In this document: one piece after another, positions 9,090-35,369 of the stretch | Numbering within the stretch: position 1 is the stretch's first letter | Layout of the letters: each line of letters opens with the position of its first letter | Assembly: GCF_016432865.1 (NCBI RefSeq) | Contig: NC_067400.1 | Span: forward strand, 628,990,001 to 629,054,000 | Reading direction: 5' to 3' | DNA from: Antechinus flavipes | Taxonomy: Eukaryota | Length of the DNA stretch: 64,000 bases | Program-made: the position numbers and the translations under genes | The notes under the pieces: generated by a model | Seen by the model: the letters and a program-made list of their open reading frames with translations, nothing else | Databases searched by the model: none | Told to the model about the DNA's origin: nothing

Positions 9090-10532
9090 ATGGGCCGCTG
9101 GCCGCCTGTCCTGCTCTGCCTGGGTAAGTCAGCGCGGCCCCAGCTCCCCCAAAGTCGCCGTGGGCTCTCCGGCCGCTGGGGGCTCCCCATGTGGCAGAAG
9201 GGCTGGGACCCCGGACCCTCCCCAGACTTGCTCCTCGGCCTCTCCCTTCCCCAGGGCTGAGGGAGCGGGTCTGGGGGGCGGCCTCTCACCGGACCTCTTT
9301 AACAGGGCTGTACCTGAGCCAGGAGACCAGGGCACAGAATGGTGAGTAGCGAGTCTCCCCTACCCAGGCCCGCATGGGGGAGGGAGGGCGGGGCCCCCAG
9401 CTGCCGGGGCCACCTGGACCTGCAGGGTTTGCTTCCCTTCCAGAAACCTTTCCCAGGCCCCAGATCATTTTCGAGACCGGCTCTGTGGTCATGGTGGACA
9501 AGCCCGTGTTCATCCGGTGCCGGGGGCCCAAGGAGGCCCGTGTGTTCGTCCTGCAGAAGAGGGAGGACAAGGACTTCATGGAGAGCGAGCACTCCATCTG
9601 GAACGAGGCCCTCTTCTTCTTCCCCCACATGAACGACACCATGGCCGGCCACTACAGCTGCTTCTATCAGTCCGCCTCCGGCATCTCGCCGCTCAGCGAG
9701 AGCGTGAAGCTGGCTGTGGCCGGTACGCGGGCGAGGGGGACGGGGCCCGGGCCGGCCCCCGGGGCTGGAGGCCGTGCACGCCTTCGGGAGGGCGTCAGGG
9801 GCCGCCTCTGCCTCGCTTTCCCCACCAGTAAAATGGATGCTTGCAAAAAGCTCCGGGGACGGCTCCCGGCACCCGCTGGGACTTGTAAGTGCTTCTTCCT
9901 TCGCGGGCCCTGCTTTTTCTCTCCCTAGCCCCCTTTGCTTCTCTTCTCCCCCTTTTCACTTCCTCTCAGGACACCGGGATCGTCCCCACTCAGTCCCGGC
10001 GTCCCGCCGACTCGGAGCCCTCTTCTCCCGCAGGCGTGATCCCCAAACCCCACCTCGTGGCCAGTCCCGGCCCCCGGGTGGCCCCGGGCAAGGCTCTGTC
10101 CTTTAAGTGCTGGTCGGACCAAAAGCTGGACCGGCTGGTCGTGTATCAGGACGAGGGGCTCATCCCGCTCATGTACCGGCTCGCCCCCGACGCGGAGATC
10201 CAGGTCTCCTTCCCCAAGGCCGGCGCCAAACACGAGGGCATCTACTCCTGCATCGGCTTTGCCAGCGAGGAGCCCCTCAGGTGGTCGATGCCCAGCGACC
10301 CCCTGGTGCTCACAGGTGGGCCCGGCCCCTCCTCTCCTCCCGGGAGGTCAGGGGTGGGAGAGGAGACTTCCAGGGGGAGGCGAGGAAGGGTCCCAGCTCA
10401 GAGGTGAGGGGGATATGGGATAGCTCCAAGGCCTAATGGGAAACCTATCCCTCAGTCTCCCGCTCTCCGAGGCTCACTGCGAGGATCACGGTCCTGGTGC
10501 TGCTGCCGGCCCTGGGCACGTTGCTGCGCTAA
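9090..10532 (+). CDS. Gene A: LRC-type (GP6/FCAR/NCR1/LILR-like) two-Ig protein, 235 aa, putative GPI signal
   Basis: Exons 9090-9123 (MGRWPPVLLCL), 9306-9341 (GLYLSQETRAQN), 9444-9722 (Ig1 ETFPRPQI..RCRGP..GHYSCFYQ), 10034-10315 (Ig2 VIPKPHL..KCWSD..GIYSC..WSMPSDPLVLT), 10456-10532 (VSRSPRLTARITVLVLLPALGTLLR*). All introns GT-AG, phase 1. The last acceptor has a short pyrimidine tract. Confidence 0.88.
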
Positions 10533-10609
10533 GCACGGACCGGACGGACGGGGCGCGGGGAAGGCGGCCGATCGCTGCCCCAGGCCAGAGCCCCGGTGCA
10601 AGCACAGGC

Positions 10610-10615
10610 AATAAA
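10610..10615 (+). terminator. Poly(A) signal of gene A
   Basis: AATAAA 77 nt after the TAA stop. Confidence 0.7.
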
Positions 10616-11003
10616 CGCGAGGTCAATGTCACGTCGGTCTCTCTGTCCTGGGGCGTGCGGGGGGGGGGGGGGCTCGGTGGGCACCCCCTGGCCCTCCGGC
10701 GTACAGGGAATAGTGTTCTGCGTGACTGTGTACATGAGGGTTGTGTGGGCACGACACCAGTGCGCCGTGGACTCTGCCTGTGTGAGTTGGGTTTGGCGTG
10801 GAGGGCGAGTGTGTGCGCGCGTAACTGTGACTACTACGTGTGCACGTGCGTCTCGGCGCGTGTGTGTGACCACGTGTAGATTGCGCGGGCACGACTACGT
10901 CGGCCACAGTCACTGCCGAGCACGAGGCCCGGGTCAGGGCTCATCCATCATACATGGAGAAAGGAGAGAAGGTCAAGCTGCGCCAACGGCCTGCCCAGAG
11001 TTT

Positions 11004-11092
11004 CCCACAATGCTCTGGAGGGAAGTTCCCAGAGCCCCGGGGGATCTCCCCCAGCCACACCCAGGGTGACAGCGTCTTCAGTTAGGAACTGC
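11004..11092. repeat. 89-bp duplicated block X (copy 1; identical copy at 16940-17028)
   Basis: CCCACAATGCTCTGGAGGGAAG...CAGTTAGGAACTGC is present at both places. Confidence 0.92.
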
Positions 11093-12278
11093 CCCCAAAG
11101 GTGCCCAGTGAGTGGTCTGTGTGTCCGGGAGCCCCCACCCGCCTGGCGGCCTCTGCTTCCCCTGCCGGGCCCTTCCCCCGGGGCTGTCCTCCGGGTGGCT
11201 CGAAGCTGGGCACTGACCTCCCGGCCCTCGGACCCTTTCCTAGCCTTCGGGGTGCAGGCGGCCTCCGTGGGTGGGCACACGGTGAGCCAGCAGCGTCCTA
11301 GGGCAATACCTCCAAGCAGGCTGGGCCCGACATCGGGTCACTGCGGGTGCCCGCGGGCTTGGTTTCCCCCTCCGTGTAGCCAGGGCACGGAAAGGGGCAA
11401 GTTCGGGTTCGTTTCTGCACGATTCTGAGTCCCCATGTGCCCTCCTTCCCTTCCCTTCCCTGCCCCTCCCCAAGACCATGAGCAAGCTGCCGCAGGTTGT
11501 ACCTAAGTGCATTTTGAGCACATTTCCACGGGAGAAAAAAAGCCACAAAACAAACGAGAAAGGAAAAAAGACGAAAGCCACGTGTCCGTCCCCACGGAGC
11601 CTCCTTCCTTCCCCGGCGCTGCGATTTTCGCTCCCGCCTCTGAGGAATGGTCCTGCCTCCCGGGGCCGTGGCTCGGGCCCGGGCTTGCTGTTCCCGGGAA
11701 GGAGGCTCTCCCGGGCCGGCCCTTCCTGTAAGCCCGGGCTTTTCTGGGAGCTGCCTGCTCGGCGTTCCCGATAGGACCCGAACGTCCCATCACTCGCACG
11801 CGGCAGTTGATCCGCTGCCCGGCTGGGGGGCGGCCGCCCCCTTCCCGGGTCCTTGCCCCTCCGCCGGGAGCTGCTGCGGTTGTTTGCCCACGTGGCCCCC
11901 GTACGGACCAGTCGCCATACTGGTATTTAACAAAGCGGGTCGGACCGACCCCCGGGAAAGGGGAGCACAGGAGGGGGCTGGGCCGGGGACCTTCCACTGG
12001 GCACTTCGGAGAAAAGCCGGCGTTCCGCTGGGGAAGCCTCTTGCGGGGGCTCCGGTGCCGCTTGCAATCGTGCCCCCTTGTGGGGGATGAGACCTGCCCT
12101 GATTGCACGAGGATGGGCACGGACTGAGAGCGCGGACCGCGGTCAGGCCGGAGCAGCGGTGCCCATCGGGGGCGCCCCGGAGACAGGGCGGGGGCACGTG
12201 GACACTGGGTCCGGCCGGGCCTTGGTCAGAGCCGGCCGGGGGCGTGGCTCCCCCAGCCCAGGCGGTGCCTCTGGACTG
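11090..12278. repeat. ~1.19-kb duplicated block Y (copy 1; ~99% identical copy at 19627-20805)
   Basis: By-eye alignment shows roughly ten substitutions and a few short indels. Confidence 0.93.
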
Positions 12279-12514
12279 GGGGGGTGCCTGAGTGCGAGCA
12301 CTCGCCGCGGATCCCGAGGATGTCGGTGCTCACTCCCCGCTCCGCACGTGGCCGGACAGAAAGGAGCCGCGGCCCCGCCCTCCGCGAGTCTCCGCCCCTT
12401 TGAGAGCACTTGCCCTCGGGCGGGGCCCGGGCAGAGCGGGGCCGACAGCGGAGCGGCTCGGGATCCTCCTCCAGTTCCCCAGGCTCCCCGCGGGCCTGGG
12501 ACCCGCTCAGCACC

Positions 12515-14618
12515 ATGGGCTTCCACAGGCCCTTCCTGCTCTGCCTCGGTGACTGAGCCCCACCGGGGTCTAGGGGGCGAGGGGGGGGACAAGGGCTGAG
12601 GACCGAGGGAAGGAGGCAGGAAGACTGGGGGACGCAGACGAGCAGCTGTCATTGGGGGGAACTTTCTACAGGCTTCTATGTGGTCCGGGCTCTGCAAGAG
12701 TTCTGTGAGTCTTTGCGCTCCCCCCTTCCCCTCCCCCGTTCCACTTTCCCTCCCTCCTCTCCCCCCATCCCATCTCCCCCCTCCCTCTCCCGCCGGCGGC
12801 CCCGGGGGCGGGCTCTGGGCTGCGGGGGGCGGGGGCGCTCGCGGGGCGCCGGGGTCCCCCTGGACCTCCGGGCTGCCTCCCCCGCAGACGAGCTGCCGGC
12901 GCCCCGCTTGGAGGTGGAGCCCAGCTACCCGGTGCCGCTGGGGGCGACGCTGCTGCTGCGCTGCCGGGGGGCGTACGACTCGTTCAGCTACCGCTTCTAC
13001 AAGGATGCCCTGCAGGAGGCCCTGAGCCTGGAGAACTCGTGCTGGGAGAGCATGACCCCCCACCTGCGCCACCCCCAGGCCACGGCCAGGCTGGGCGGCC
13101 GCTACCGCTGCCAGTACGACTTCCACTCCTTCTGGTCCAAGGTCAGCCTGCCGCGGGACGTGCCGGTGGCCGGTGAGTGGGGGGGACGGCGAGGGAGGGG
13201 CGGACTGGGGGGAAATAGCGGGGGGAGATGCGGGAGGGGGCACGAGGGAGGCCGAGGAGCCGGGTCCCCCCCACCCCTCCCTCCTCCCCGACCCCCACAC
13301 GCCAGGGCCCCTCAGGGAGGCCGGACCGCACCTGGGGAGGGCGGGGGTGCGGGAGACGCCGCCTCTCTGCCCCTACCAGTCCCGGTTCCGTGAGCTCAGC
13401 TGGGGTCACGCCCCCTTTTTCTCTCCGCATCCTTCTGGTCGGTCGGGGGTCCCCAAGCTTTCCTTAAGCGCTTCCCGTGTGCCAGGCCCGAGGCCAGGGG
13501 GCCCAGGGAGGAGGGAAACAGCTGTTCTCGGGGCCCTGGGCTAAGGGCTGACAGCCGGGGGCGAGGGGGGGCATTGTCTTGGACTCGGGGGCTTGGGCGG
13601 GCTCTCAGCCGCTAGTCTGTCTGGGGCCGGGCTGGAGCCTGAGGCTGCCTTCGGACTCCAGCTCAGCCCTCCTGGGCACCGGCCTCTCCCCCACCGGGAG
13701 TTGCTGGCCTGGCAGGGAGTCTGGGCACTCTGCAGCCTGGAGGGAGGGAGGGGCCCCCCCACCTTTCCCATTTCCTTGTTGACCACCATCGATCACCAAG
13801 CCCAGCCCCTTTAAGGGGAGCTTCTGGAGCTTCTGGTGCAACAATCCGTCCTCTAGTTGCCAGCAAAAGTCAGGGGACGCCGGTAAGTGTTGAACACCCC
13901 GGCCTCTGCCCGATAATTCTGCCTTGTTCCCCTTTCGCCGCCTCTTTACGCTGAGTCCCGACGAGCCGTCCCAGCACCCTGCCGTGACCCCTATTGCAGA
14001 CTGACCGTTTGCCCCGGGCCCCCCTTGGGTGCATTCGCAGGGACGTTCCCGGGGGTCCCAGGCCTTTCGGAGGGGAGCCCCTCGGGCTGCCCTCAGCCGG
14101 GAGGAGACCGCGCCCCTTGATCTCCAAGGTCTCTCCTTACAGGCCTCTATGAGAAACCCTTCCTGTGGGCGACTCCCGGGCTCTCGGTGCCCGCGGGGGG
14201 GAGCGTCACCTTCCACTGTAACTCCAGCGTGGGCCTGGACACTTTCGTCCTGTACCACGGCTCGCCGGAGAGCGGCTTCCGGACCCTCGAGGCCGAGAAC
14301 GCGGGCAGGAACGAGGCCGTCGTCGCCCTCCACAACAAGACGGAGCAGATGAATGGGCAGTACAGGTGCTACGGCTACGTGAGCAGCGAGCCCCATAGCT
14401 GGTCGGCTGCCAGCGACAGCCTGGTGCTGAGCGGCGGCGGTAAGCGGCCCCGGGAACGGGGACTTGCCTCCCGCCCCGGGGGATTCTGGGCGGCAGAGGG
14501 GTCGCGCCCTCGGGCTCCACATCCCCTCCGCTCTGTTCCCACAGGGGAACTCCCTCCTGGGTGCCGGAACGCGGTTCTTCTCCACGTGGTCCTGGCCTTG
14601 GCCACACGGGCAGCTTAG
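12515..14618 (+). CDS. Gene B: LRC-type two-Ig protein, 240 aa, putative GPI signal; chimera of D-like exon 1 and E-like exons 2-5
   Basis: Exons 12515-12548 (MGFHRPFLLCL), 12672-12704, 12888-13172 (Ig1 ELPAPRL..RCRG..GRYRCQY), 14143-14439 (Ig2 LYEKPFLW..FHCNS..GQYRCYG..WSAASDSL), 14545-14618 (GELPPGCRNAVLLHVVLALATRAA*). GT-AG, phase 1. Confidence 0.9.
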
Positions 14619-14738
14619 GCCCGGCCCAGCCAGATGGGCAGTGCTGAGGCCCGGGAGAGCCAGAGCTGTTTCCCTGGACACAGACGGACGGAGTTCCCCG
14701 CTCCCCGATTCCCAAGCCCAACCTCCCGGGCAACCCCC

Positions 14739-14744
14739 AATAAA
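14739..14744 (+). terminator. Poly(A) signal of gene B
   Basis: AATAAA 120 nt after TAG. A homologous signal follows gene E. Confidence 0.7.
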
Positions 14745-14921
14745 CCGCTGATCGCATGTGCTGTGGCTCCTTGTGTCGGGGGGAAGGGGGGCCTGATGGA
14801 CAAAAGGGCCCTCGGGGACTGGGGAGGACGGAGAGGAGAGCTTCAGCACCCAGACCGGACAGTCCAGAAGGAGACAGAGAGAAGGCCCGGCCCAGCTCCT
14901 CGTTGTCCTCCGTCTCCACAG

Positions 14922-15128
14922 CCTAGAAAGTCTGCCAGGCCAGTTTCTGAGCAGCAAAGGCCACAGCGAGTCGTTTTTCCGGGCCAGGGAAGCCTGGGGA
15001 GGGGACAGAAGGGACCACAGCCTCTGGTCCGGAGCGACATGCCCGGCACATAGGGCAGGAAACGCCAGGCCCAAAAAGGAGCCCTGGACAGTGCCTGGGG
15101 CGGCTCTGGAGATTGTGGTCACGGGGCC
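14922..15128 (+). pseudogene. Possible decayed Ig exon downstream of gene B
   Basis: Strong acceptor (ctcctcgttgtcctccgtctccacag). Mixed frames give LESLP.., RVVFPGQ.. and PAHRAGNARPKKEPWTVPGAALEIVVTG, which resembles an LRC Ig exon end (..WSAPSDPLELVVTG). No donor, and shorter than a full exon. Confidence 0.4.
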
Positions 15129-15415: not shown

Positions 15416-16410
15416 ACACGTCCAATAGGAACAGACAATTTTCCAATGATGAAATTGAAACTATTTCCACTCATATGAAAGAAAATCACTATTGATCAGA
15501 GAAATGCATATTAAGACAACTCTGAGATACCCCTACACATCTGTCAGATGGGCTAAGATGACAGGAAAAAATAATGATGGATGTTGGGGGGGATGTGGGA
15601 AAACTGGGACACAGATGCATTGTTGGTGGAGTTGTGAATACATCCAGCCATTCTGGAGAGCAATCTGGAATTATGCCCCAAAAGTTATCAAATTGTGCAC
15701 CCCCATTTGATCCAGCAGCGTTTCTACTGAGCTTATACCCCAAAAAGATACTAAAGAAGGGAAAGGGATCCACATGTGCAGAAATGTTTGTGGCAGCCCT
15801 GTTTGTAGTGGCTAGAAACTGGAAATTGAATGGATGCCCATCAGTTGGAGAATAAATTGTGGTATAAGAATGTTATGGAATATTATTGTTCTGTAAGAAA
15901 TGACCAGCAGGATGAATACAGAGAGGCTTGGAGAGACTTATGTGAACTGATGCTGAGTGAGATGAGCAGAACCAGGAGATCATTATATACCTCAACAACG
16001 ATCCTGTATGAGGATGTATTCTGATGGAAGTGGATTTCTTCGATAAAGAGACCTAACTGAGTTCCAATTGATAAATGACGGACAGAAGCAGCTACACCCA
16101 AAGAAAGAACACTGGGAAATGAATATAAACTGCTGGCATTTTTGTTCTTCTTCCCGGGTTATTTTTACCTTCTGAATCCAATTCTCCCTGTGCAACAAGA
16201 GAACTGTTCGGTTCTGCAAACATATATTGTATCTAGGATATACTGCAACATATCTAACATATATAGGACTGCTTGCCATCTGGGGGAGGGGGTGGAGGGA
16301 GGGAGGGGAAAAATCGGAACAGAAGTGAGTGTAAGGGATAATGTAAAAAAAAAAATTACCCTGGCATGGGCTCTGTCAATAAAAAGTTATAATTATTAAA
16401 AATAAAAAAG
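15416..16410 (+). mobile_element. 5'-truncated LINE-1 (ORF2 C-terminus + 3'UTR + A tail)
   Basis: Translates to [33 protein letters not shown]. Ends ctgtcaataaaaag plus an A-rich tail. Closely related to 44801-45885. Confidence 0.92.
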
Positions 16411-17922: not shown

Positions 17923-17970
17923 AGCTGGCCTCGCCCTCCAACCTCGTGCCCAGAGCATCCCGGAGGCAGC

Positions 17971-19554
17971 ATGGAGCCCAGACTTCTGCTCCTGCTCTGG
18001 CTTGGTGAGGGTCTGCGCCCGCGGTTTGAGGGGCAGGGGGAGGGAGGAAAGGAGGAGGGGAGGGGAGAGAAGAGGAGGGAGGGGGGAGGGAAGGGAAAGG
18101 AAGGGGGGGCGGCCCTCATGGTGTCTGCCGCCTCTCTCCCAGGGCTGAGCGCCAGGATCCAGGCTGTATGTGAGTGCCCTCCCAGTCTGCACGCATTGGG
18201 TGCCAGCTGTGTAGCTGGTGCGGGCCCTGCCCGGAGAGGAGAAGGGAGGGAGGAGAGGGGATGTCCTGAGAGGGAGGGGGGAGGAAAGGCCTGGGAAGAG
18301 GAAAGGAAGAGGGGGAAAGGGACTAAGACGGAGGGGAGGGTCCAGGAGGGACCCCCTGGGGGAGGAGCGGGGCAGGGCCGCGTGCCCCCCTCCACGGCTC
18401 CCGCGGCCTCTGCAGATTTCAAGGTCCCCAGCCCCGAAATGAGGATCCGGCCCCACAACATCCTCCCGGTGGGCAGCCCCGTCACCATCAGCTGCTACAC
18501 GCCCATGATCGCCGACTACTTCCGCCTGATCCGATTGGACTTTTTAGAGGAGGGAATCGCGGGCGATGAGATCCCGTCCATTTACCCCGGGCACGAGGTC
18601 CACATGTACCACCCGGCCATCAGGCCCGAGCATGCCGCCAGGTACTACTGCCAGTACCGGCTCAGCGAATTCTGGTCCTTCCCGAGCTCCTACATGGACC
18701 TGATAATCTCAGGTGAGCGCCTCCCCTCCCCGCTTCCCACCCCCGCCATGAGCCCATCCCCCAGTCTGCCCCCTGCTCCCCCACAAGCCCCTCTGCTGCA
18801 GGGTTCTCGAGGGCTGAGAGAAGTGGAGACCCCGGCCCCCTCCGCACACACGCGGACCTGGCCAGTTCTGAGAGCTCCCCCTCCCGCCCAGGAGGCCCGC
18901 CCCCCCCCCACGTGCCCCGCCCACCCTACCTACAGCCCCAGCCTCGAAGGCCTGGGGGTTGGGGGGGGGGAGGCGCGGGCCGTGGCTGACGGGCTCCCGG
19001 TCCCTCAGGTTTCTACAGCAGCCCGCACCTGGTCATGACCCCCACCAAGGTCAAGGAGGGCGGCTCGGTGAGCGTCAAGTGCACTACGGGCGGCGAACGC
19101 CTAATCATCTGGAACCTGATCAAGGGGGTGACGGACTTCCGGGGCTACGTGACGTCCGCCGTGGACCTGCAGCTCGAGGAGACCCTGAGCAACCTGAAGC
19201 CCAGCCAGTCCGGGCAGTACGCGTGCTACGGCAACAACGGCACCCACCAGCGCCTGTGGTCCCTCCCTAGCAACTTGGTGACCCTCACCGTGGGGGAGCA
19301 GCGTAAGGAGGCGGCGCCGGCCGGGAGGGGGGGAGGGGCGGGCAGGGAATACGTGGGGGGAGACCGGGGTGCCAGGCAGGAGGAGGGGCGGGGAGCCGGA
19401 GGGACAGGGGGGGACGCCGGAGAGAGGGCCGGGGGCGCCCGTCCCCACACCCCTCTCCCTTCCCACAGGGGCCTCGGCTCCCAGGGCTGCTCGCGGGACC
19501 CACGTCAGCCGCGTGTTCCTGGCGCTGCTTCTCCTGCAGAGCCGCTGGATGTAG
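17971..19554 (+). CDS. Gene C: divergent LRC-type two-Ig protein, 245 aa, putative GPI signal
   Basis: Exons 17971-18004 (MEPRLLLLLWL), 18143-18169, 18416-18712 (Ig1 ..SPVTISCY..ARYYCQY..WSFPSSYMDL), 19009-19302 (Ig2 ..SVSVKCT..GQYACYG..WSLPSNLVTL), 19469-19554 (RASAPRAARGTHVSRVFLALLLLQSRWM*). GT-AG, phase 1. Confidence 0.9.
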
Positions 19555-19619: not shown

Positions 19620-19625
19620 AATAAA
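19620..19625 (+). terminator. Poly(A) signal of gene C
   Basis: AATAAA 65 nt after TAG, immediately followed by block Y. Confidence 0.7.
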
Positions 19626-19626
19626 G

Positions 19627-20805
19627 TGCCCCCAAAGGTGCCCAGTGAGTGGTCTGTGTGTCCGGGAGCCCCCACCCGCCTAGCGGCCTCTGCTTCCCCT
19701 GCCGGGCCCTTCCCCCGGGGCTGTCCTCCGGGTGGCTCGAAGCTGGGCACTGACCTCCCGGCCCTCGGACCCTTTCCTAGCCTTCGGGGTGCAGGCGGCC
19801 TCCGTGGGTGGGCACACGGTGAGCCAGCAGCGTCCTAGGGCAATACCTCCAAGCAGGCTGGGCCCCGACATCGGGTCACTGCGGGTGCCCGCGGGCTTGG
19901 TTTCCCCCTCCGTGTAGCCAGGGCACGGAAAGGGGCAAGTTCGGGTTCGTTTCTGCACGATTCTGAGTCCCCATGTGCCCTCCTTCCCTTCCCTGCCCCT
20001 CCCCAAGACCATGAGCAAGCTGCCGCAGGTTGTACGTAAGTGCATTTTGAGCACATTTCCACGGGAGAAAAAAAGCCACAAAACAAACGAGAAAGGAAAA
20101 AAGACGAAAGCCACGTGTCCGTCCCCACGGAGCCTCCTTCCTTCCCTGGCGCTGCGATTTTCGCTCCCGCCTCTGAGGAATGGTCCTGCCTCCCGGGGCC
20201 GTGGCTCGGGCCCAGGCTTGCTGTTCCCGGGAAGGAGGCTCTCCCGGGCCGGCCCTTCCTGTAAGCCCGGGCTTTTCTGGGAGCTGCCTGCTCGGCGTTC
20301 CCGATAGGACCCGAACGTCCCATCACTCGCACGCGGCAGTTGATCCGCTGCCCGGCTGGGGGGCGGCCGCCCCCTTCCCGGGTCCTTGCCCCTCCGCCGG
20401 GAGCTGCTGCGGTTGTTTGCCCACGTGGCCCCCGTACGGACCAGTCGCCATACTGGTATTTAACAAAGCGGGTCGGACCGACCCCCGGGGAGCACAGGAG
20501 GGGGCTGGGCCGGGGACCTTACACTGGGCACTTCGGAGAAAAGCCGGCGTTCCGCTGGGGAAGCCCCTTGCGGGGGCTCCGGTGCCGCTTGCAATCGTGC
20601 CCCCTTGTGGGGGATGAGACCGGCCCTGATTGCACGAGGATGGGCACGGACTGAGAGCGCGGACCGCGGTCAGGCCGGAGCAGCGGTGCCCATCGGGGGC
20701 GCCCCGGAGACAGGGCGGGGGCACGTGGACACTGGGTCCGGCCGGGCCTTGGTCAGAGCCGGCAGGGGGCGTGGCTCCCCAAGCCCGGGCGGTGCCTCTG
20801 GACTG
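19627..20805. repeat. Duplicated block Y (copy 2), between genes C and D
   Basis: ~99% identical to 11090-12278. Confidence 0.93.
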
Positions 20806-20894
20806 AGTACATCTGGGTCTACACTTGAAGTCACCCCTCCCCCTCTTGGCGATCCTCGGGGAGGCAGTCCTCCCCACTGGCCGGAGAGAAAGGA

Positions 20895-20983
20895 GCCGCG
20901 GCCCCGCCCTCCGCGAGTCTCCGCCCCTTTGAGAGCACTTGAACTCAGGTCCGCCTGGATCACGTGGGGCCGCTCGGGCCAAT
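20895..20983 (+). promoter_or_regulatory. Gene D promoter: GC boxes, then CACGTG-N12-CCAAT
   Basis: CCCCGCCC and CTCCGCCCC around 20900-20927, CACGTG 20961-20966, CCAAT 20979-20983. Same spacing as in the gene E promoter. Confidence 0.55.
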
Positions 20984-21053
20984 AGCAGAGCAGCTGAGGA
21001 TCCTCCTCCAGTTCCACACGCTCCCCTCGGGCTCGTGACCCTGGCTGGGCACC

Positions 21054-22894
21054 ATGTGCTTCCCTCAGCCCTTCGTGCTTTGTCTCGGTGATTGAGCCCG
21101 CCCCACCCTCCCCCCTGAGTCTTGGGGCGCGGGGATCGAGGGACAAGGGCAAGGGCTGGAGGGAGGGGGGAGAAGGGGGCGGGGCCGGGAGAGAGAGGGG
21201 CAGAGCAAAGGGTAGGCTGGGGGCGGGAGCGGGGGTGGGGCCGGCCTGGGAGTTGGGCTCAGGGCCCGGGGCACGGAGGGGGCGGGTCTGGGGGGGAATG
21301 GGGGTGTCCAGTCTGGGCGGCGGGGGTCGGGCTGCCCCTTAAGGGGGTCTGGGCGGGGCAGGCCTATTTCTTGCAGGACTGCAAGTGGTCTCCAGTGGAT
21401 TCGAAGACGTACAATTACGTAAGTGCCCCTCCCCCAACCTGTCCCTCACTAGTCCCGGGAGACCCCCGGGCGGGAAGGGGAGGGGTGGCGGGCGGGGGCG
21501 CTCCGGGCAGCCCCAGCCGGACTCTGGCCGGTCCCTTCGCAGAGATGCTGCCGCCCCCCAAGCTTTCCTTGGAACCCGGCTTTCCGGTCAAGCTGGGGGG
21601 CATGGTGTCGTACCTGTGCGTGGGCGCCTACGGCTCCGAGAGGTACCGCCTGGTCCGAGAGATCCACGGCCGCCTGCGGACCGTGATCAATCTGGAAGCC
21701 CTGTGGGGCGGCCGCGGAGCCACGTTCAACTTGACCGACCTGGTGGCGGAGCAGGCGGGGCCCTACCTGTGCGTCTACAAGTTCGGGGAGCTCTACTCCA
21801 AGAACAGTGACAAGGTCCCGCTCATTATAAGAAGTGAGTGGGGGGCGTGCTCGGGGGCCGCCTGGCGCCCTTCGGAGATGCCTCTGCCCTGGTCCCGCCG
21901 GCCAGCTCGGGAGGCCGGGGGGGAGGCCCCCCACATGCTGAGAGGTGGCTGGGGTTGGGGGCTTCCTCCGCCGGGAAGGCCTTCTCCCCCTGCTCCGCCT
22001 CGGAGCCTTTCTTCGGTCAGATGAGCCGAGTGCGGATTGTCCATTGGGAGGAGAACGCCCCGGAGCCCGGGGCGGGGACCAGGACAGGGCCGGAGCTCCC
22101 CAGATGAAGCAATGGGCAGAGGGAAAGGAGAGCCCCCAAATAATTTGTCTTCCTGGAGGCCCGCGGAGACATCGCTGGCACAGACCCGCTAGCCCTGTAC
22201 TTCGGGCACATCCCCTTAGCCTTCCTGAGCCTCAGTTTCCCCATCTGTCTAACGGGCCAAATCATCCCCAAGTCCCTCTGCTGACCTCTCAGCTCCCCCC
22301 ACCCGGTTTTGGGCGTTGTCTTCTTCGCCTCCCCGGGGAGGCCGCCCGCTCCGAGGGTCCTCTCCCCCCCCCTCCATGCCCTCTCCCCTGCTGCCGCATC
22401 CCAGACACCCCGGGGGCTGGCTGACTCCCGGCTCCCTCCCGCAGACGTCCTGGAGAGCCCCTTCCTGTGGGTCTTTCCCCCCGGCTTCGTCAGCCCGCGG
22501 CAAACCCTGTACTTCCACTGCAACTCCAGCCTGAACCTGGACAGGTACTACCTGTACCACGGGGCCATCGAGGCCAACAAGCCCTTCATCGAGCCCCTGA
22601 ACATCTCGGCGCACGAGGCCCAGTTCTACTTCCGGGAGATGCACCGGCGCCTGCTGGGCGAGTACCAGTGCCTGGCCTACCACTCCCGCAACCCCTATCA
22701 CCTGACCGGCCTCAGCAACAAGGTGCTGATCACTGCCGGTGAGTGGCCGGGCCCGGGGAGCCCCCGAGCCCCGCGCCCGGGCCCCTCACACTCTCCTCCG
22801 TCTTCGTAGGTGCCCCCCGCTGCCCGCCTCCTCCTGGACGTCGTCTGATCCCGCGGCCCTGACCGTGGCTGCCCTGGGACGGCTGCTGGCCTAG
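21054..22894 (+). CDS. Gene D: LRC-type two-Ig protein. As assembled 237 aa ending GAPRCPPPPGRRLIPRP* (22862); a GPI-like tail lies one base out of frame (to TAG 22892-22894)
   Basis: Exons 21054-21087 (MCFPQPFVLCL), 21377-21418, 21543-21833 (Ig1 MLPPPKLSL..YLCVG..GPYLCVY), 22445-22738 (Ig2 VLESPFLW..FHCNS..GEYQCLAY), last exon from 22810. AATAAA at 22949-22954. Confidence 0.87.
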
Positions 22895-23624
22895 GCCGGG
22901 CCGCCGGGGGAGCCCCCCCCCCCGGATCCCCACCCCCATGGAAAGGAGAATAAAAAGCTGATTGTATCTTCTCTGTGGCTTCCATGTGAAGGGTCTGGGA
23001 AGGGCAGAGAGCTCCTTTGTGGGTCTGGGGGCTCCGGGAGAACGAAGAAGGAGGGAAGCACCTTCTCCTCCCAGAATCCAGCTGTCCTCGCACTGGTCAG
23101 GGCCGTCGGTCTGTGTCTGTCTGGGACAGAGAAGGGCTCGTACGGTCTCCTTCGGAACAAAGCTCCCCTTTCTGTGTGGCGCGTTTCCTCTCCCAGCTCG
23201 GAAACCCCCGGCCAGGGAGAGGGCACCCGTTCCAGCCCCAGAGGGAAACCCCTTGACAAAGGAGGGGGCAAGCTGGGGGCCTCTTCTTCCCCACTCCCTC
23301 CATGGCTCGCATCTCGGAGCCTCGCCTTTCTGCCAGCTGCCCGTGGGCCTCCCCCCCTCTCCGCCGGTGCTGGCTAGGCCCAAGAGGGAGGGCACCCGCT
23401 GCCCAGCCCGTCCTGGGCAACCCCAGTTCTGATGTGGACGTCGGAGACAACTGCACTGCCCCGAACGCTGGGCAGAAGTTCATTTTAGATTAAAGTCGGG
23501 TCTCGGTTTAGCAATAGCCAGAATGAGAATGGTGCCCTCTCCTCCTCCAGCCCTGGCCTTGAGACACTGGGCTTCTGTCAGGGGAATGGGACGAGGGTCC
23601 CTAAAACTGGAACTGACTTATTAC

Positions 23625-28619: not shown

Positions 28620-29545
28620 CCTTCCATTTTTCCGGGGCTAGAGAAGAGTTATTGGAGAACAGCTCTATGCCATTGGCCGGACTATGAGACCACAGGCCAA
28701 AATCGGCGTGGGCAGGACGGACACGAGGACTATCCCCCCACCGGGGACCGGGGACTCCTTAGGGGGGACAGGCGGAAATGGCCCGGGCTACCACGTCAGT
28801 GACTAAGCCGCCATAGGGTGGTCACCGGCTCCTGTGGGACAAGGCAGCAGAGGCAGGGAAACATCTGGGGGCCTTTCCAGGCAGGGGGAGCTGCCGCGCT
28901 GGGCTCGGTCAGCGTGACAAGCAAAAGCAAGAGTGGACGACCTTCGGCTACCTTCCCGAGACTAAGCGAGCGGACTCAGAATCTGCAGCTCCCGGCTCTG
29001 GGGCCTTAGGTTCGGAACTCTGCCCAACTGACACCCATGGGACCAGAGGGGCCCAGACTCCTCCTAACGGGCAGACTCACTGGCCCAGCTCTCTGAGCTC
29101 ACCAGGATGATGGAGCCCCCTCATTTACCCCAGAGCGCCCCAAAGGCGCCCAAAGAACAGCGGGCCGGCGCTTGTGTCTCGGGTCATCCTGCCACTGCGG
29201 CCCTTTCCCACCTCACCTGCAGAATTCAAGCGCTAATCGGCTCCATCACCGCCGGAAGAGACTCCACTGGACGAGCTTTGGACCCAGAGCTTTTCTTCCC
29301 CAGAAAGTGACAGAAGCCAGAGAGCTCCATAGGCAAGGAGAGCAGAGCTCTTGCTGCTGCCTCCCCCCCCCCCCAAGGAGGCTGGAAAGATGAGAAAACA
29401 AGAGAAAAAGCTATTGGGGCGAGAGAAGCTCAAGATCCAGAGGAAGAGTGACCCCCCCACACAAACTGACAATCAGAACCCCAAAGAAAGACACAGCTTG
29501 GGCACAAGTTTAACTAGAATTCCTGGAAGAGAAGCAGCATTTTAT
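28620..29545 (+). mobile_element. Old LINE-1 5'UTR and ORF1 start
   Basis: Degenerate MRKQEKK..QTDNQNPKERHSLGT..actagaattcctggaa. The same motif recurs at 36350-36450 and 46050-46210. Confidence 0.5.
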
Positions 29546-29594
29546 TTAAGGGCTGTAAATGGGCATTGGGAATAAGATGCCATTTAACTTATTC

Positions 29595-29713
29595 TTTTTT
29601 TATTTTTTGCTGAGGCAATTGGGGTCACACAGCGAGGTGTTAAGTGTCTGAGACCAGATTTGAACTCCTGATTTCAGAGGTGGTGCTCTATCCACTGCGC
29701 CACCTAGCTGCCC
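29595..29713 (-). mobile_element. Short CORE/tRNA-derived SINE (WSINE1-like)
   Basis: Reverse complement starts gggcagctaggtggcgcagtggatagagcacc..tcaggagttcaaatc..tcagacactt..ccccaattgcctc, with an A tail. Confidence 0.75.
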
Positions 29714-29994
29714 TCATTTTTTTTTTTTTTTTTTGGATGAAAGGAATGGGGTTTTCTGGAAAACTGCCTGTTGGGCTGAGAGGGGCTGAGCCTTTTCAGG
29801 GCTGCTCATCCATCTTTGGTGTCCGTCTGTCCCCCAACGTTGACCTGTGGCTCCAAGAAGCTGCAGCAGGTGCGGCAGCCATGCCCGGAAACCAGCTCAG
29901 CACATGGGCTGAGCCAGCTCGGGGGCAGCCCCGGGGCGTCAGACTGGTCAGTTAGTGGGTGTCACTCCCCACAAAGTCCCCCCTGCAGTAGAAC

Positions 29995-30765
29995 GGCTGG
30001 AGGGGGGCGCCCTGTGTTCCCGCAGCCCCGATGGAGGGGGGCGCCCTGTATTCCCGCAGCCCGGCTGGAGGGGGGCGCCCTGTGTCCCGCAGCCCCGATG
30101 GAGGGGGGCGCCCTGTGTTCCCGCAGCCCCGATGGAGGGGGCGCCCTGTGGTCCCGCAGCCCCGATGGAGGGGGGCGCCCTGTGTTCCCGCAGCCCCGAT
30201 GGAGGGGGCGCCCTGTATTCCCGCAGCCCGGCTGGAGGGGGCGCCCTGTGGTCCCGCAGCCCCGATGGAGGGGGGCGCCCTGTGTTCCCGCAGCCCCGAT
30301 GGAGGGGGGCGCCCTGTATTCCCGCAGCCGGGCTGGAGGGGGGCGCCCTGTGTTCCCGCAGCCCGGCTGGAGGGGGGCGCCCTGTGTTCCCGCAGCCCCG
30401 ATGGAGGGGGGCGCCCTGTATTCCCGCAGCCGGCTGGAGGGGGGCGCCCTGTGTTCCCGCAGCCCGGCTGGAGGGGGCGCCCTGTGGTCCCGCAGCCCCG
30501 CTGGAGGGGGGCGCCCTGTGTTCCCGCAGCCCGGCTGGAGGGGGCGCCCTGTGGTCCCGCAGCCCCGATGGAGGGGGGCGCCCTGTGTTCCCGCAGCCCG
30601 GCTGGAGGGGGCGCCCTGTGGTCCCGCAGCCCCGATGGAGGGGGGCGCCCTGTGTTCCCGCAGCCCGGCTGGAGGGGGCGCCCTGTGGTCCCGCAGCCCC
30701 GATGGAGGGGGGCGCCCTGTGGTCCCGCAGCCCCGATGGAGGGGGCGCACTGTGTTCCCGCAGCC
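29995..30765. repeat. GC-rich 33-34-bp minisatellite (~23 copies)
   Basis: GGAGGGGG(G)CGCCCTGTG(T/G)TCCCGCAGCCC(CGAT/GGCT). It generates the long repetitive ORFs at 29.8-31.6 kb. Confidence 0.95.
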
Positions 30766-31504
30766 TGGAGGAGGCTCAGAGCCGCCGCACGCGGGGGTCG
30801 CCAGCTTCACCTTCCGCCTCCCGGGCCCTTGCCAGGCGCCCTGCCGCTGGCCCTGCCCCCGGCCTCGGCGGTTCTGGAGGGGCGGGGCCGAAGGCTCTGG
30901 ACCCGAGCTAACCCAGAGCGCACAGCAGTCCTCCGTCCTTGGGAAAGGAAGGACAAACAGCGCGGGCTCCAGAAGAAAGGAAAAGCAGCTCGGGCTCCTG
31001 GCCCCCCTGCTCCCAGGGAAACTCGCGTCTGCCCAGAGGGAGACCCCCGGGCTCTCCGAGAAGGGCTGCTGGTCGCGGAGCCTGTCCACCCGCTCCCTCC
31101 AGTGCTGCCCGTCAGGGGGCAGGATCGGGACCCCTGCCCGGGAGCCACCTCGGGGCCCCTCACCTCCCGACTCCGTGGCTGCCGAGTCCCGCCCATTGCG
31201 GGAGGGGGTGGGCCCCGGCTCTGCCCTCATCCCGGCACTTTCAGGACGCACTCTCGTTGTTTCTGGAGCACTGTAAACAATAACTGGGAGGGGGGCTGCT
31301 GGCCACAAGCCTGTCCCCCTCCCGCCCTCCCCTCCCCCCGCTCAGCCGTCAGTCGGCCCTTGCTACCCCCTTGCTCTGAGGCCGTCCCCCGCCCCCAGAA
31401 CTTCTGTTTGGTCCCATCACCTCGGGGATCGTTCCAAGGGGATAGGTCACTTGGGGCTGTGAGGTTGGAAAGTGCTCCACGTGGTACCGCAAGTGGTTCC
31501 CACA

Positions 31505-31665
31505 GACCCCTCCCAGCTATTGTTATCCCACTTTACAGGTGGGGAAACCAAGGCAGACAGACGTTAGGTGACCCGCCCAGGGTCCCACAGCTTGTTAGAG
31601 GCTGGATTTGAACTTGGGTCTCCCCGACTCCGGGTGGAGTATCCTAACCACTGCGCCACCTGACT
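31505..31665 (-). mobile_element. MIR/CORE-SINE
   Basis: cccactttacaggtggggaaaccaaggcag..gacccgcccagggtcccacagc..ggatttgaacttggg..ccactgcgccacc. Confidence 0.75.
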
Positions 31666-32020
31666 GCCTCAAAGCCTCGGACCTCGGGCTTTCCAGGCTC
31701 CCAGTGACAATGGCCGCGCTCCATCTCCTGACTAAATGCATTCTCTTTGGAGGCTCCTCCTCCTCCTCCCCCGAGGCTGGTGCTCCCCTCCCAGACGTCT
31801 CCCATGGCTTTGCCAGATGTTTCCCCATTAGACTGGCAGCTCCCTGAGGCCGGGGCCTGGCACAGGGGGAGGGGGGCCGAGCCGTCCCCCCAAGCCTCTC
31901 CCCAAGACAGAGCGGAGGTCCTGCGGCCCCAGAGACTGCCCCCAGCTGGCGCCGCCTCCGGGCAGAAGCCAGGCTCCGAGCGTCCCTACTCTTACTGTAG
32001 GACTCACACGCGGCCTGGGG

Positions 32021-32116
32021 CGTCACTTCCCGCCCTCGGGTCCCAGGAAGGGTCACGTGGGGGAGGATGAGCCAATGGCAGGGCCACTCCCCCCCTCCCG
32101 CCGCAGCTCCCACGTG
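32021..32116 (+). promoter_or_regulatory. Gene E promoter: half-CRE, CACGTG-N12-CCAAT, second E-box
   Basis: CGTCA 32021-32025, CACGTG 32054-32059, CCAAT 32072-32076, CACGTG 32111-32116, ATG 32150. Confidence 0.55.
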
Positions 32117-32149
32117 CTCCCTGCCTGTCTGCAGGGGCTGCTCAGGACC

Positions 32150-35100
32150 ATGCGCCCCGCGCTGACCGCCCAGCTCTTCCTGAGTGAGTGCGGTGGGGGA
32201 GGGGTGGGAGCGAGGAGTCCTGGGGGGCAGAGACGGGAGGGGGTAGAGAGGGGGAGGAGTCTGGGGTTCTGTCCTGGGGTGGGACTGGAGTGTAAGGGAG
32301 GGGAAGAAAGGGAATAGTCCTGGGGTTCTGTCCTGAGCTGGGGCGCGGGAAAGTGGAGGAGGGAGGCTGGAGGCCAGTCTCCATGGGGAGGCCCCAAGGA
32401 GGGAAGCGAGGAGGGGCAGAAAGAGGGGAGGGGGGAGAGAAAGAGCAGCCGGAGCCCCCAGGGAGGGAGGCAGGAAGAATGGGGTCCAGGGGAGCAGTCT
32501 CTCACGGGTGGGGGGGGGACTTTCTGACAGGCTTCTCCGTGATCCAAGCGCTGCAAGAGTCCTGTGAGTCTTTCCCCCCCTTCTCCTCCTCCCCCGTTCC
32601 ACTTTCCCTCCCTCCTCTCCCTCCCTCCTCTCCCCCCATCCCATCTCCCCCCTCCCTCTCCCGCCGGCGGCCCCGGGGGCGGGCTCTGGGCTGCGGGGGG
32701 CGGGGGCGCTCGCGGGGCGCCGGGTCCCCCTGGACCTCCGGGCTCCCTCCCCCGCAGACGAGCTGCCGGCGCCCCGCTTGGAGGTGGAGCCCAGCTACCC
32801 GGTGCCGCTGGGGGCGACGCTGCTGCTGCGCTGCCGGGGGGCGTCCGACCCGTTCAGCTACCGCTTCTACAAGGAGGCTCTGCGGGAGGCCCTGAGCCTG
32901 GAGGACTCGTGCTGGGAGAGCATGACCCCCCACCTGCGCCACCCCCAGGCCAGGCTGGGCGGCCGCTACCGCTGCCAGTACGACTTCCACGCCTTCTGGT
33001 CCAAGCTCAGCGTGCCGCGGGATGTGCCGGTGGCCGGTGAGGGGGGGGCGGCGAGGGAGGGGCGGACTGGGGGGAAATAGCGGGGGGAGATGCGGGAGGG
33101 GGCACGAGGGGCCCCTCAGGGAGGCCGGACCCCACCTGGGCCCCGCCGGCCTACCCCTCCCCCCACGTGGACCCCCACAGAACCGCCCACATCCCCGCGC
33201 CTCGGGCTTCTGGGCCGCAGAGGTGACTAAGGCCGGGGCTCGTCCCCGCTCTCAGACTCCGTCCATACGCTATTGAGTCCAATAATTGAGGTCAGTAAGA
33301 AAAAAAATTAGTGGCGATCAAAGGAGTTGGGCCGGGCTTTCTGGGCGGCTCATTCCAGCCCACGGAGGCTCAGAGAAGTTCTGGTCTCCCCTGGAATTTG
33401 GAGCTCTCCTTGAACTCCATTTAGGAGATTAAAGCGCCCGGGAAACATAAGGGCCGTGACGTTTCTCCCTTAAACAGGTCACGTTGCCTGTGCATTACAT
33501 ACACGTGGCTGGCGGTGAAATTTAAAGACAGCCTCGTTATCCTCAGTCCCTACTGTGACAGGAGCCACGTGACTTTGGCCAAGCCCCTTCTTTCCTCTGA
33601 GACTCAGTTTCCCCGTCTGTCAAGTGAGACGTGCGGACCGAAGCGTAGCAAAGTAGGCTCCCAACTCCGTGGGACTGGGACCTCACCTTCCCAGCTTCCC
33701 GCAGGGGTCCACCATCCCTGAGTGGGCTCGGTGACCCGCAGAAGCCACCGGGGTCTCCTCCGCCTGCCGCTTCCAGGGGCCTCGGCCGTGCTTGGGGTGG
33801 CCCCTGACACCGCAGCCCCGTGGCATTTAAGCACTGCCGGCCGTCCAGAGGGAAAGCTTCCCGTTCTCCCCCCACAGTGCTCTTCTCCGGCCTCCTCGCT
33901 GACTTGCCTCCCAAGCTATAGAACAAGGACTATTCGTGCTGCACGAGACCCCGGCAGTGTTTAGATTCAGAGAGGGCCTGGGACCGGCTGAGCACAAGCT
34001 GACGTCTTCAGACCGCCATCCCTGGCTGCTCCTGGCCCGGCCCGTTCCTCCTCAAACCGGCTCAAGCCCCTTCCGAGTCAGGCTGAGACTTTCTTTTTCT
34101 TTTTTTAATTGGAGCTTTTTCTTGACAAGACATATGCATGGGTAATTTTTCAGCACTGACCCTTGCAAAATGTTCTCTTCCAACTTCTCCCCGCCTTCCC
34201 CCCATCCCCTCCCCCAGAGGGCAGGCAGTCCCATACGTGCTAAATCGGTTAAAGTATATGTTAAATCCAACATATGTATACATGTCCTAACACGTATATA
34301 TGTATACAAATACAACATGTACACTTGCTGCCCAACAAGAATCGGACTCTGCAATAGTGTCCAATCAGCCTGTGAAGGAAGTCCAAAATGCAGGCGGACA
34401 AACATAGAGGGACTGGGAATTCTATGTAGTGGTTCGGAGTCATCTCCCAGAGTTCTTTGCCTGCGTGTGGCTGGTTCAGTTCATTCCTGCTCCATTGGAA
34501 CTGATTTGCTTCATCTCATTGTGAGGGGGCCGATCAGAATTGCTCATCACATAGTATTGTTGTAGTATAGAATGATCTCCTGACCCTGCTCGTCTCCCTC
34601 AGCATCAGTTCAGTTTCAAGGGACATAGGGACCATCAGCCCCTAGGAGAAGGGGAAGGAGGAAGGTGGATCTTGCAGTAGCTATACCTCCTAGAACCGGG
34701 GGACAGGATCAACCCTCAGCTGACCCTCTGCCTCTCAGAGCCCAGAAGTAGGAGCCAGGAAGGAGGAGACCGGCTCCCTTTGATCTCCTCCGTCTCTCCT
34801 TACAGACCTCTATGAAGAACCCTTCCTGTGGGAGACTCCCGGACTCTCGGTGCCCCCCGGGGAGAACGTCACCTTCCACTGTAACTCCAGCGGGGGCCTG
34901 GACAAGTTCGTCCTGTACCACAGCACGCCGGAGCGTGGATTCCGGACTCTCAAGCCCCAAGACGGGAACGAGGCCGTTGTCCCTCTCCACAACGAAACAG
35001 AGGAAATAAATGGGAATTACACATGCAAGGGCTACGTGAGCAGTGAGCCCCATCGGTGGTCGGCTGCCACTGACAGCCTGGTGCTGAGTGGCGGTAAGTG

Positions 35101-35369
35101 GCCCCGGGAATGGGGACTTGCCTCCGGCCCTGGAGGATTCTGGGCGGCAGAGGGGTCGCAGCCCTCATGCTTCACATCCCCTCCGCTCTGTTCCCACAGG
35201 GGGCCTCCCTCCTGGGTGCCGTAAAGCCGTTCTTCTCCATGTGGTCCTGGCCTTGGCCATGCTGAGGGGCTTAGGTGCAGTGCTGAAGCCTGGGGGACCC
35301 AGAGCTGTTCCCGTGGAGACAGACAGATGGAGTTCCCTGCTCCCTGATTCCCAAGCCCAACCTCATTAG
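32150..35369 (+). CDS. Gene E: LRC-type two-Ig protein, 267 aa, paralog of B with an extended C-terminus (possible TM + 27-aa tail, no Tyr motif)
   Basis: Exons 32150-32183 (MRPALTAQLFL), 32531-32563, 32758-33036 (Ig1), 34806-35093 (Ig2), 35200-35369 (GGLPPGCRKAVLLHVVLALAMLRGLGAVLKPGGPRAVPVETDRWSSLLPDSQAQPH*). AATAAA 35378-35383. Confidence 0.88.
34093..34615 (-). mobile_element. LINE-1 3'UTR fragment in gene E intron 3
   Basis: T-rich tail followed by the reverse complement of the L1 3'UTR (gggtaatttttcagcactgacccttgc..atctcccagagttc..). Absent from gene B intron 3. Confidence 0.85.

Follow-up and report, generated by a model that had tools for sequence, protein, structure and literature searches.

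Five two-Ig genes of the leukocyte receptor complex type at the GP6 position of Antechinus flavipes: decayed transmembrane exons and possibly gene-specific anchoring

How are the products of a receptor gene family held at the cell surface, if at all, when the genes have lost the canonical transmembrane (TM) motif of their relatives? This question is raised by a stretch of 64,000 nucleotides of the Antechinus flavipes genome (the window), in which positions 9090-35369 carry five tandem two-Ig genes of the leukocyte receptor complex (LRC) type, A to E, all on the plus strand and with canonical splice sites. Each gene consists of a leader exon, a mini-exon, two LRC-type Ig exons, and a single short last exon, followed by AATAAA 9 to 121 nt 3' of the stop. 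The leader exon is 34 nt long in all five genes and encodes a hydrophobic, LRC-like leader (e.g., MGRWPPVLLCLGLYLSQ), the mini-exons measure 36, 33, 27, 42, and 33 nt from A to E, and all 10 Ig exons are in phase 1 and open, with paired Cys. No stalk exon is present in A to E, Ig2 being spliced straight to the last exon in five of five genes. A tblastn search of the whole window recovered exactly these 10 Ig exons, all inside genes A to E, and none in the rest of the window. Altogether, the five divergent two-Ig LRC genes are a real tandem family. The initial annotation had described five tandem genes with the LILR/GP6 exon signature and AATAAA after the tails of A, B, and C, and both points were confirmed. 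The A, B, and C tail sequences that it gave match as well, apart from spliced gene A, which reads ...LTVSRS... and not ...TGVSRS.... Annotation as characterized GPI proteins was to count against novelty; RefSeq already models the five genes with the same ends and names them "platelet glycoprotein VI-like," yet they are uncharacterized. Consensus splice sites and these RefSeq models are the grounds for assigning the last-exon acceptors, and sequencing reads over the region are DNA-like, with even depth and the introns present.

RDH13 (adh_short) starts at about window position 41931, directly after gene E. In eutherians, GP6 occupies the position adjoining RDH13. The five-gene cluster takes up this GP6 position, immediately ahead of RDH13. 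The main LRC with its canonical receptors, including the canonical NxxR receptor P0126, lies on the same chromosome at 5.3 Mb from the cluster. In phmmer searches against the PDB, the Ig domains of the cluster matched only PIR-B, LILR, KIR, GPVI, NKp46, OSCAR, and FCAR; the Ig exons of gene A matched LILR and GPVI chains, and Ig2 of gene B matched PIR-B, LILR, KIR, and GPVI chains with E values down to 3e-41, so that the LRC match is not due to chance. Identity of the Ig fold is ~30% to GPVI and 34% to LILRB4, and the AlphaFold model of the Sminthopsis orthologue of gene A (pLDDT 88.7) has LILRB4, GPVI, and NKp46 as its nearest Foldseek neighbors. In the tree, a branch with support of 86/81 separates the 16 RDH13-side sequences from all others. 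Camel GP6, the one eutherian GP6 sequence included, gave a p-AU of 0.157 when joined to these 16 sequences and of 0.107 when joined to the A group alone; orthology between the cluster and camel GP6 is neither established nor rejected by the tree.

The family had been proposed to be old and maintained, which is borne out by the four orthogroups: A, B/E, C, and D each recur in other marsupials. Every species read has intact Ig exons, and most pairs give a dN/dS of 0.15 to 0.8. It might still be argued that the genes are mis-modeled, the true transcripts containing undetected TM or cytoplasmic exons, or that several of them are incipient pseudogenes. Automatic LRC models often overlook short TM exons (PMC6557307), a frameshift sets the gene D tail apart from those of devil and Dromiciops, Ig2 of a B-like gene of the devil is frameshifted, and dN/dS between Antechinus and Sminthopsis exceeds 1 for A Ig2 and C Ig2. 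However, the plus strand between 9 and 41 kb holds no additional strongly hydrophobic or NxxR-type exon outside genes A to E, AATAAA comes straight after every last exon, none of the 10 Ig exons is interrupted or lacks its paired Cys, and orthologues keep the same five-exon architecture in up to seven species, which makes this explanation highly improbable.

The last exons give a clue to the origin of the family. Those of A to E align to canonical NxxR TM exons such as ...QDYTLGNVIRLSLAGLVLVLLGVLLAEAW (P0126, P0130, and P0157), the NxxR TM motif of LRC receptors being described in PMC6557307. In the last exon of gene A, SQD[HY]T and ALG.LL persist and ~5 residues are deleted relative to the NxxR TM exon, and N..H...LGILLT persists in that of Dromiciops B/E. 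The canonical Asn/Arg of NxxR is missing from all five last exons: the N..R core is lost in the A group, and B/E show His or nothing there. As shown by these alignments, the last exon of A to E derives from the NxxR TM exon of FcR-gamma-coupled LRC receptors, of which the canonical Asn/Arg core and all that followed are gone. We infer that neither canonical FcR-gamma coupling nor ITIM/ITAM signaling would be possible for A to E. The cluster shares with GP6, LILRA, NCR1, FCAR, and OSCAR the exon plan (a leader of 34 nt, then a mini-exon and a pair of Ig exons in phase 1), with GP6 and the FcR-gamma-coupled LRC receptors the Ig fold and the homology of its last exon to their NxxR TM exon, and with GP6 its chromosomal place adjoining RDH13. 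In contrast, A to E have neither the mucin-like Ser/Thr/Pro stalk of GP6 nor the Asn-x-x-Arg core and acidic TM end of GP6 and the FcR-gamma-coupled receptors, and they are devoid of a cytoplasmic tail, save for 27 motif-less residues in gene E. The earlier view of a lineage-specific, non-signaling branch agrees with such two-Ig LRC genes without stalk, NxxR arginine motif, ITIM, or ITAM.

Gene A (coding exons 9090-9123, 9306-9341, 9444-9722, 10034-10315, and 10456-10532, plus strand) encodes 235 aa in our splice model, and RefSeq isoform P0007 equals this model from Met40 through the stop, its tail included. The last exon (10456..10532, plus strand), which aligns to the NxxR TM exon, encodes VSRSPRLTARITVLVLLPALGTLLR and a stop, with AATAAA at 10610..10615 (plus strand). 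The tail has 14 hydrophobic residues, ending one residue from the C terminus, and S-x-S lies 9 residues upstream. A tails were compared among seven marsupial species of five orders, and those of Sarcophilus, Sminthopsis, Dromiciops, Macrotis, Phascolarctos, and Gracilinanus have equal length and an equal stop place. In a rule scan of C termini, which is descriptive and without positive or negative controls, 14 to 19 hydrophobic residues ended 1 residue before the C terminus in six of the seven species, the tail of Dromiciops having 9 that end 6 before it; S-x-S stood 7 to 11 residues before the hydrophobic run in five of the seven orthologues, and the scan gave no clean small-x-small site at the right distance in koala and Gracilinanus. 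In the published layout of GPI signals, small residues at omega-1 to omega+2 are followed by a spacer from omega+3 to omega+9 and a hydrophobic stretch from about omega+10 to the C terminus (PMC2571997). At the sequence level, the C terminus of gene A fits this layout, conserved across five marsupial orders, and for gene A only does the GPI-type C terminus of the initial annotation stand. We propose that S-x-S, a 6-residue spacer, and 14 hydrophobic residues make up a layout resembling a GPI-attachment signal, which would have been retained since before the didelphid/australidelphian split, and that the C-terminal peptide would most likely be removed in the endoplasmic reticulum and a GPI anchor put in place. 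The product would then be a raft-resident, sheddable, non-signaling binding protein. GPI anchoring of the gene A product has, in our judgment, an about even chance of being correct.

Alternatively, the short hydrophobic C termini of A and B could span or dip into the membrane with no GPI exchange, maybe paired with a partner through candidate residues such as the Arg of dasyurid A or the His and membrane-proximal Cys of B/E. The A and B tails derive from a true TM exon, and the tails of Gracilinanus A and Dromiciops B/E reach 19 to 20 uncharged or near-uncharged residues. Moreover, the A tail of the Sminthopsis orthologue is drawn as a helix of 19 residues in the AlphaFold model; this helix, together with the flanking Arg, could serve as a short TM segment, and the QD[HY]T kept in the supposed spacer of A could stay in the mature protein, favoring a membrane-spanning or secreted form. 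Nevertheless, dasyurid A has only 14 hydrophobic residues between two Arg, which is short for a plasma-membrane span, and most A orthologues have no cytoplasmic residue past the hydrophobic run. The dasyurid Arg is also off the NxxR position and missing outside dasyurids, so that the canonical FcR-gamma motif is lacking. We consider this tail-less membrane form unlikely.

Genes B and E bear on the same choice. Gene E (32150-32183, 32531-32563, 32758-33036, 34806-35093, and 35200-35369, plus strand) encodes 267 aa from the leader Met, and RefSeq P0002 has the same exons with a start further upstream, adding 25 residues at the N terminus. Its last exon (35200..35369, plus strand; AATAAA at 35378..35383, plus strand) encodes GGLPPGCRK, the 20-residue hydrophobic AVLLHVVLALAMLRGLGAVL, and a 27-residue tail without Tyr. 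The earlier statement that none of the genes has a full TM segment is not borne out here, and gene E probably encodes a type I membrane protein with a short motif-less tail. Gene B (12515-12548, 12672-12704, 12888-13172, 14143-14439, and 14545-14618, plus strand) encodes 240 aa, exactly as RefSeq P0001, and its last exon (14545..14618, plus strand; AATAAA at 14739..14744, plus strand) encodes (G)ELPPGCRNAVLLHVVLALATRAA and a stop. A conserved CTTAG supplies this stop through its TAG, which is in frame in gene B because 10 nt precede it and not 11 nt as in gene E. The B-like gene of the devil stops at the same place, and the frameshift in its Ig2, as read in the assembly, suggests that the B lineage may be decaying. 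Gene B would be a copy of the transmembrane-type E shortened by a 1-nt difference, and its product either a younger GPI form or else a tail-less membrane form. In the rule scan, the gene B tail (AVLLHVVLALA plus TRAA, with S-G-G-G upstream) is marginal with respect to the GPI hydrophobic-tail layout. Immediately outside the hydrophobic part, B/E share a conserved PPGC, which also speaks for the tail-less membrane form; its membrane-proximal Cys would be lost if GPI cleavage took place upstream, which argues against such cleavage, and PPGC could remain in the mature protein, favoring a membrane-spanning or secreted form. We hold GPI anchoring of the gene B product to be possible but less likely than not.

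Two known systems offer parallels. FCGR3A and FCGR3B have near-identical two-Ig ectodomains, FCGR3A being membrane-spanning and adaptor-coupled and FCGR3B being C-terminally shortened and GPI-anchored. FCGR3B, encoded on another chromosome, is a member of the FcR family and not of the LRC, and its switch hinges on one particular Ser of the attachment site, whereas no attachment-site residue is defined in the cluster genes. In Old World monkeys, CEACAM GPI signals arose repeatedly from the TM exon by a 1-nt deletion and then a stop (PMC2832619). In primate CEACAM5-8, small indels and a stop turned a CEACAM1-like TM exon into a short hydrophobic C terminus, as in B versus E; the gene family and locus are different, and the GPI anchorage of CEACAMs is experimental, whereas here it is predicted.

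Genes C and D point elsewhere. Gene C (17971-18004, 18143-18169, 18416-18712, 19009-19302, and 19469-19554, plus strand; 245 aa in the splice model) has orthologues in Sminthopsis and devil, and its last exon (19469..19554, plus strand; AATAAA at 19620..19625, plus strand) encodes ASAPRAARGTHVSRVFLALLLLQSRWM and a stop, with a hydrophobic run of 8 residues that is too short to support the GPI claim made for it. Gene D (21054-21087, 21377-21418, 21543-21833, 22445-22738, and 22810-22862, plus strand; 237 aa in the model) has a last exon at 22810..22894 (plus strand), with AATAAA at 22949..22954 (plus strand), which in frame encodes GAPRCPPPPGRRLIPRP, a polar Pro/Arg C terminus with the stop at 22860-22862, and the gene end annotated in L003 corresponds to window position 22862. 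The shifted frame, used by devil and Dromiciops, reads ...ALTVAALGRLLA and a stop, and, as read from this comparison, the hydrophobic end of gene D is lost in Antechinus flavipes through a frameshift. Both C and D are probably secreted.

Could all five products then be secreted soluble LRC proteins, comparable to LAIR2, LILRA3, and A1BG, with a last exon that is a drifting, functionless relic of the TM exon? In B/E, C, and D, the stop and frame of the last exon do vary from paralogue to paralogue and from species to species, and both the polar tail of D and the short hydrophobic run of C are in line with this idea. Against it, the A tail is constant in length, hydrophobicity, and stop place over seven species, which is unexpected for a drifting relic, and an uncleaved hydrophobic C terminus usually hinders secretion. 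LAIR2, LILRA3, and A1BG, which are LRC Ig proteins, lack a membrane anchor and serve as decoys or plasma binders, and the products of those marsupial LRC genes in which no TM exon was detected may be secreted (PMC6557307). Such an anchorless state is likely for D and perhaps for C, whereas A, B, and E retain a hydrophobic C-terminal peptide from a dedicated last exon. Secretion of all five products seems quite improbable to us.

The claim that all five genes appear GPI-anchored was, thus, overstated: in the rule scan, the GPI hydrophobic-tail layout is absent in C (8 residues), D (polar), and E (TM-like, with 27 residues following), and the conserved Cys of B/E adds to this. We slightly favor an LRC family with decayed TM exons and gene-specific anchoring, in which A would be GPI-like, B either GPI-anchored or tail-less, E a membrane protein, and C and D secreted. 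Anchoring may be mixed, with a lipid (GPI) anchor on the product of one old gene and perhaps on that of one young copy. Our literature search found no paper on GPI anchoring of LRC proteins.

A broader scenario, in which the marsupial GP6 position holds no canonical FcR-gamma collagen receptor, the founding member, gene A, is GPI-anchored throughout the marsupial radiation, and a second TM-to-GPI switch produced B from an E-like gene by a 1-nt difference, is on balance rather unlikely. If it is true, the cluster would bring the first members with a lipid anchor to the leukocyte receptor complex.

The window DNA is GC-rich and mammalian, very GC-rich at 48 to 64 kb, and holds one 500-N gap distant from the gene cluster. 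Between 9090 and 35369 on the + strand, we built five genes (A to E) with consensus splice sites throughout. Each opens with an ATG-initiated leader exon of 34 nt, followed by a mini-exon (36, 33, 27, 42, and 33 nt from A to E), two phase-1 Ig exons of 279 to 297 nt with paired Cys, and a single short last exon, with an AATAAA 9 to 121 nt past the stop in all five. The predicted products of A, B, C, D, and E are 235, 240, 245, 237, and 267 aa long. Among the RefSeq entries, B is identical (240 aa), E has the same exons with an earlier start, and A is found as an isoform; these three, named "platelet glycoprotein VI-like," carry the same tails (the C-terminal peptides encoded by the last exon) as our models, and the annotated end of D coincides with the modelled stop. 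The leader exon of E (32150-32183, + strand) was not obvious: the upstream ATG used by RefSeq (32075-32149) adds 25 residues before the hydrophobic leader, and the Met at 32150, opening the 34-nt leader, suits the family pattern better. RDH13, a short-chain dehydrogenase of 336 aa in the annotation, starts ~6.5 kb past E (about 41931 onward) on the + strand like the Ig genes, and the cluster therefore occupies the place of eutherian GP6.

Within the window, tblastn with the five proteins as queries located ten Ig exons and no others. Queries extended to P0126 and P0130, two canonical LRC receptors with the NxxR TM exon, and to camel GP6 revealed no extra LRC exon outside 9000-35500 and none in the 10 kb upstream of Sminthopsis A. 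The three + strand frames from 9 to 41 kb were also scanned for concealed TM or cytoplasmic exons, using 18-residue windows with a mean Kyte-Doolittle value of at least 1.9 and, as a second criterion, N..[RK] ahead of a hydrophobic run; such exons were rejected, the scan returning only the tails of A and E plus noise in AT-rich repeats. Of six sequencing runs found for the region, the four examined were DNA-like, with an even depth of ~13 to 78, contigs colinear with the introns, and no splice joints, and a search confined to RNA libraries returned no run. The predicted last-exon acceptors rest on the sequence, on the AATAAA sites, and on RefSeq models from more than one species. The last intron of B (14440-14544, 105 nt) contains no in-frame stop, and its retention would add 35 residues and leave the C terminus unchanged; the equivalent intron in E does not stay open in frame.

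The Ig exons matched only the generic Pfam families Ig_2, Ig_3, and ig, near or below threshold, and an ESM Atlas look-up returned only "LILR-like Ig protein." Matches to PDB sequences were to PIR-B, LILR, KIR, GPVI, NKp46, OSCAR, LAIR1, and FCAR, with E values down to 3e-41. The AlphaFold model of the Sminthopsis A orthologue has a two-Ig LRC fold (mean pLDDT, 88.7) whose nearest structures are LILRB4, GPVI, and NKp46, and the model gives its final 19 residues a helical form.

The family falls into four well-supported orthogroups, A, C, D, and B/E, the last uniting genes B and E. Orthologues of A were found in Sarcophilus, Sminthopsis, Dromiciops, Macrotis, Phascolarctos, and Gracilinanus, and those of B/E, C, and D in Sminthopsis, Dromiciops, and the devil (Sarcophilus harrisii). 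The 16 RDH13-side sequences lie on one side of a branch (support, 86/81); with camel as the only eutherian GP6, grouping them with GP6 was not rejected, and plain GP6 orthology of one of the five genes is compatible with the tree. In all species read, the Ig exons remain open; dN/dS ratios lie at 0.15 to 0.8 in most pairs and exceed 1 for Ig2 of A and of C when Antechinus is compared with Sminthopsis, a pattern usual for fast-evolving immune receptors. The devil locus runs A, C, B-like, C', D, compared to A, B, C, D, E in Antechinus, and its B-like gene undergoes a frame change within Ig2 at a C/G run (13380-13400 of the devil locus sequence L004), which points to a pseudogene or to an error in the assembly.

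The origin of the tails became apparent by comparison with canonical marsupial LRC receptors. Those retrieved by a profile of A, including P0126 from Antechinus itself (same chromosome, 5.3 Mb from the cluster), have the LRC TM exon that Guselnikov and Taranin described, in which DYT is followed by NxxR and this by a hydrophobic run with ...LG.LLAEAW at its end (PMC6557307). The tail exons of all five genes could be aligned to this canonical exon. The A-group tail retains its SQD[HY]T..G and ALG[TA]LL, lacks ~5 residues, the Asn and Arg among them, and stops directly past LL[SR]; the Dromiciops B/E tail reads NTIH...LGILLT and then stops, and the tails of C and D are more degenerate. This alignment shows the tails of A to E to be shortened TM exons. 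As an observation, the five-gene cluster of the initial annotation proved real and was described precisely, and the shared loss of signalling parts proposed there is borne out. The Arg of dasyurid A (LTARI) was considered as the FcR-gamma Arg and rejected: its position differs, and it is lineage specific, with Gly found there in the other orders (bilby, koala, Dromiciops, and Gracilinanus).

The initial annotation had also proposed that all five proteins are GPI anchored. GPI signals are laid out as small residues at omega-1 to omega+2, a spacer from omega+3 to omega+9, and a hydrophobic tail reaching the C terminus (PMC2571997), and we applied this layout to each gene as a simple rule scan. 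In six of the seven A orthologues, 14 to 19 hydrophobic residues form a run ending one residue short of the C terminus, while in Dromiciops a run of 9 is followed by 6 more residues; S-x-S stands 7 to 11 residues ahead of the run in 5 of the 7 species. The length and stop place of the A tail are kept from didelphids to dasyurids, whereas a relic drifting freely should have changed. This conserved layout is the strongest support for the GPI idea. Moreover, dasyurid A has 14 hydrophobic residues between two Arg, which is short for a membrane span. GPI anchoring of A is plausible.

The tail of B is AVLLHVVLALA followed by TRAA, and it stops at the TAG within a conserved CTTAG, which is in frame because 10 nt precede it and not 11. 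The TAG is likewise in frame in Dromiciops B/E, and the devil B-like gene stops at B's place with a cleaner tail of 15 residues. However, PPGC is conserved beside the hydrophobic run in all B/E genes and would be discarded by a GPI cleavage upstream of it, and the devil copy is frameshifted in Ig2, two points that count against the GPI anchor B may carry. Gene C has 8 hydrophobic residues, with a different frame and stop in Sminthopsis; D is frameshifted in Antechinus compared to the devil and Dromiciops and ends in GRRLIPRP; E has a 20-residue segment in which His and Arg occur, followed by 27 residues that include no Tyr. The GPI reading is not supported for these three genes.

Gene B itself has a composite history. 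A direct duplication of 1.5 kb (11087-12560 versus 19624-21099, 92.7% identity) carries the D-upstream region and the D leader exon to the front of B, so that the upstream part and leader of B copy the stretch before D, and the body of B copies E with 83 to 90% identity, which makes B a chimera whose 5' end is D-like and whose body is E-like. Ig1 is nearly identical between B and E (12888-13172 versus 32758-33036; dS, 0.03), in contrast to Ig2 (14143-14439 versus 34806-35093; dS, 0.33), which suggests that gene conversion occurred recently or that the origin is mosaic. Repeats also occur around the genes. The 9-kb gap between D and E contains a GC-rich minisatellite (29994-30765) of 34- or 67-nt units (about 23 or 11.5 copies, 91 to 93% matches), open in three + frames and giving spurious ORFs of ~500 aa. 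A second GC-rich repeat (6580-7250) translates into GVGR.G.GGG.HRRGQNG-like units, and an L1 ORF2-like reading-frame fragment between B and C (15490-15860) is similar to one near 45270-45620.

In humans, LRC-encoded proteins are described as type I surface receptors, with LAIR2 as the secreted exception, and marsupial LRC genes lacking a detected TM exon have been noted earlier (PMC6557307). Our literature search found no description of a GPI-anchored or lipid-anchored LRC member, nor of the present cluster. In primate CEACAM, GPI signals derived from a TM exon (PMC2832619), a route paralleled by the in-frame TAG tail of B. Should GPI anchoring fail, what is left is a marsupial LRC family, well delimited, whose proteins do not signal and are soluble or weakly anchored. 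If GPI anchoring is true, such a branch would constitute a third mode of LRC display, raft resident, sheddable, and without a signal of its own, and would follow CEACAM and FCGR3 as a second family of Ig receptors with repeated conversion of a TM exon into a GPI signal. The presence at the GP6 place of a cluster without the FcR-gamma motif raises the question of which receptor supplies the collagen signal of marsupial platelets.
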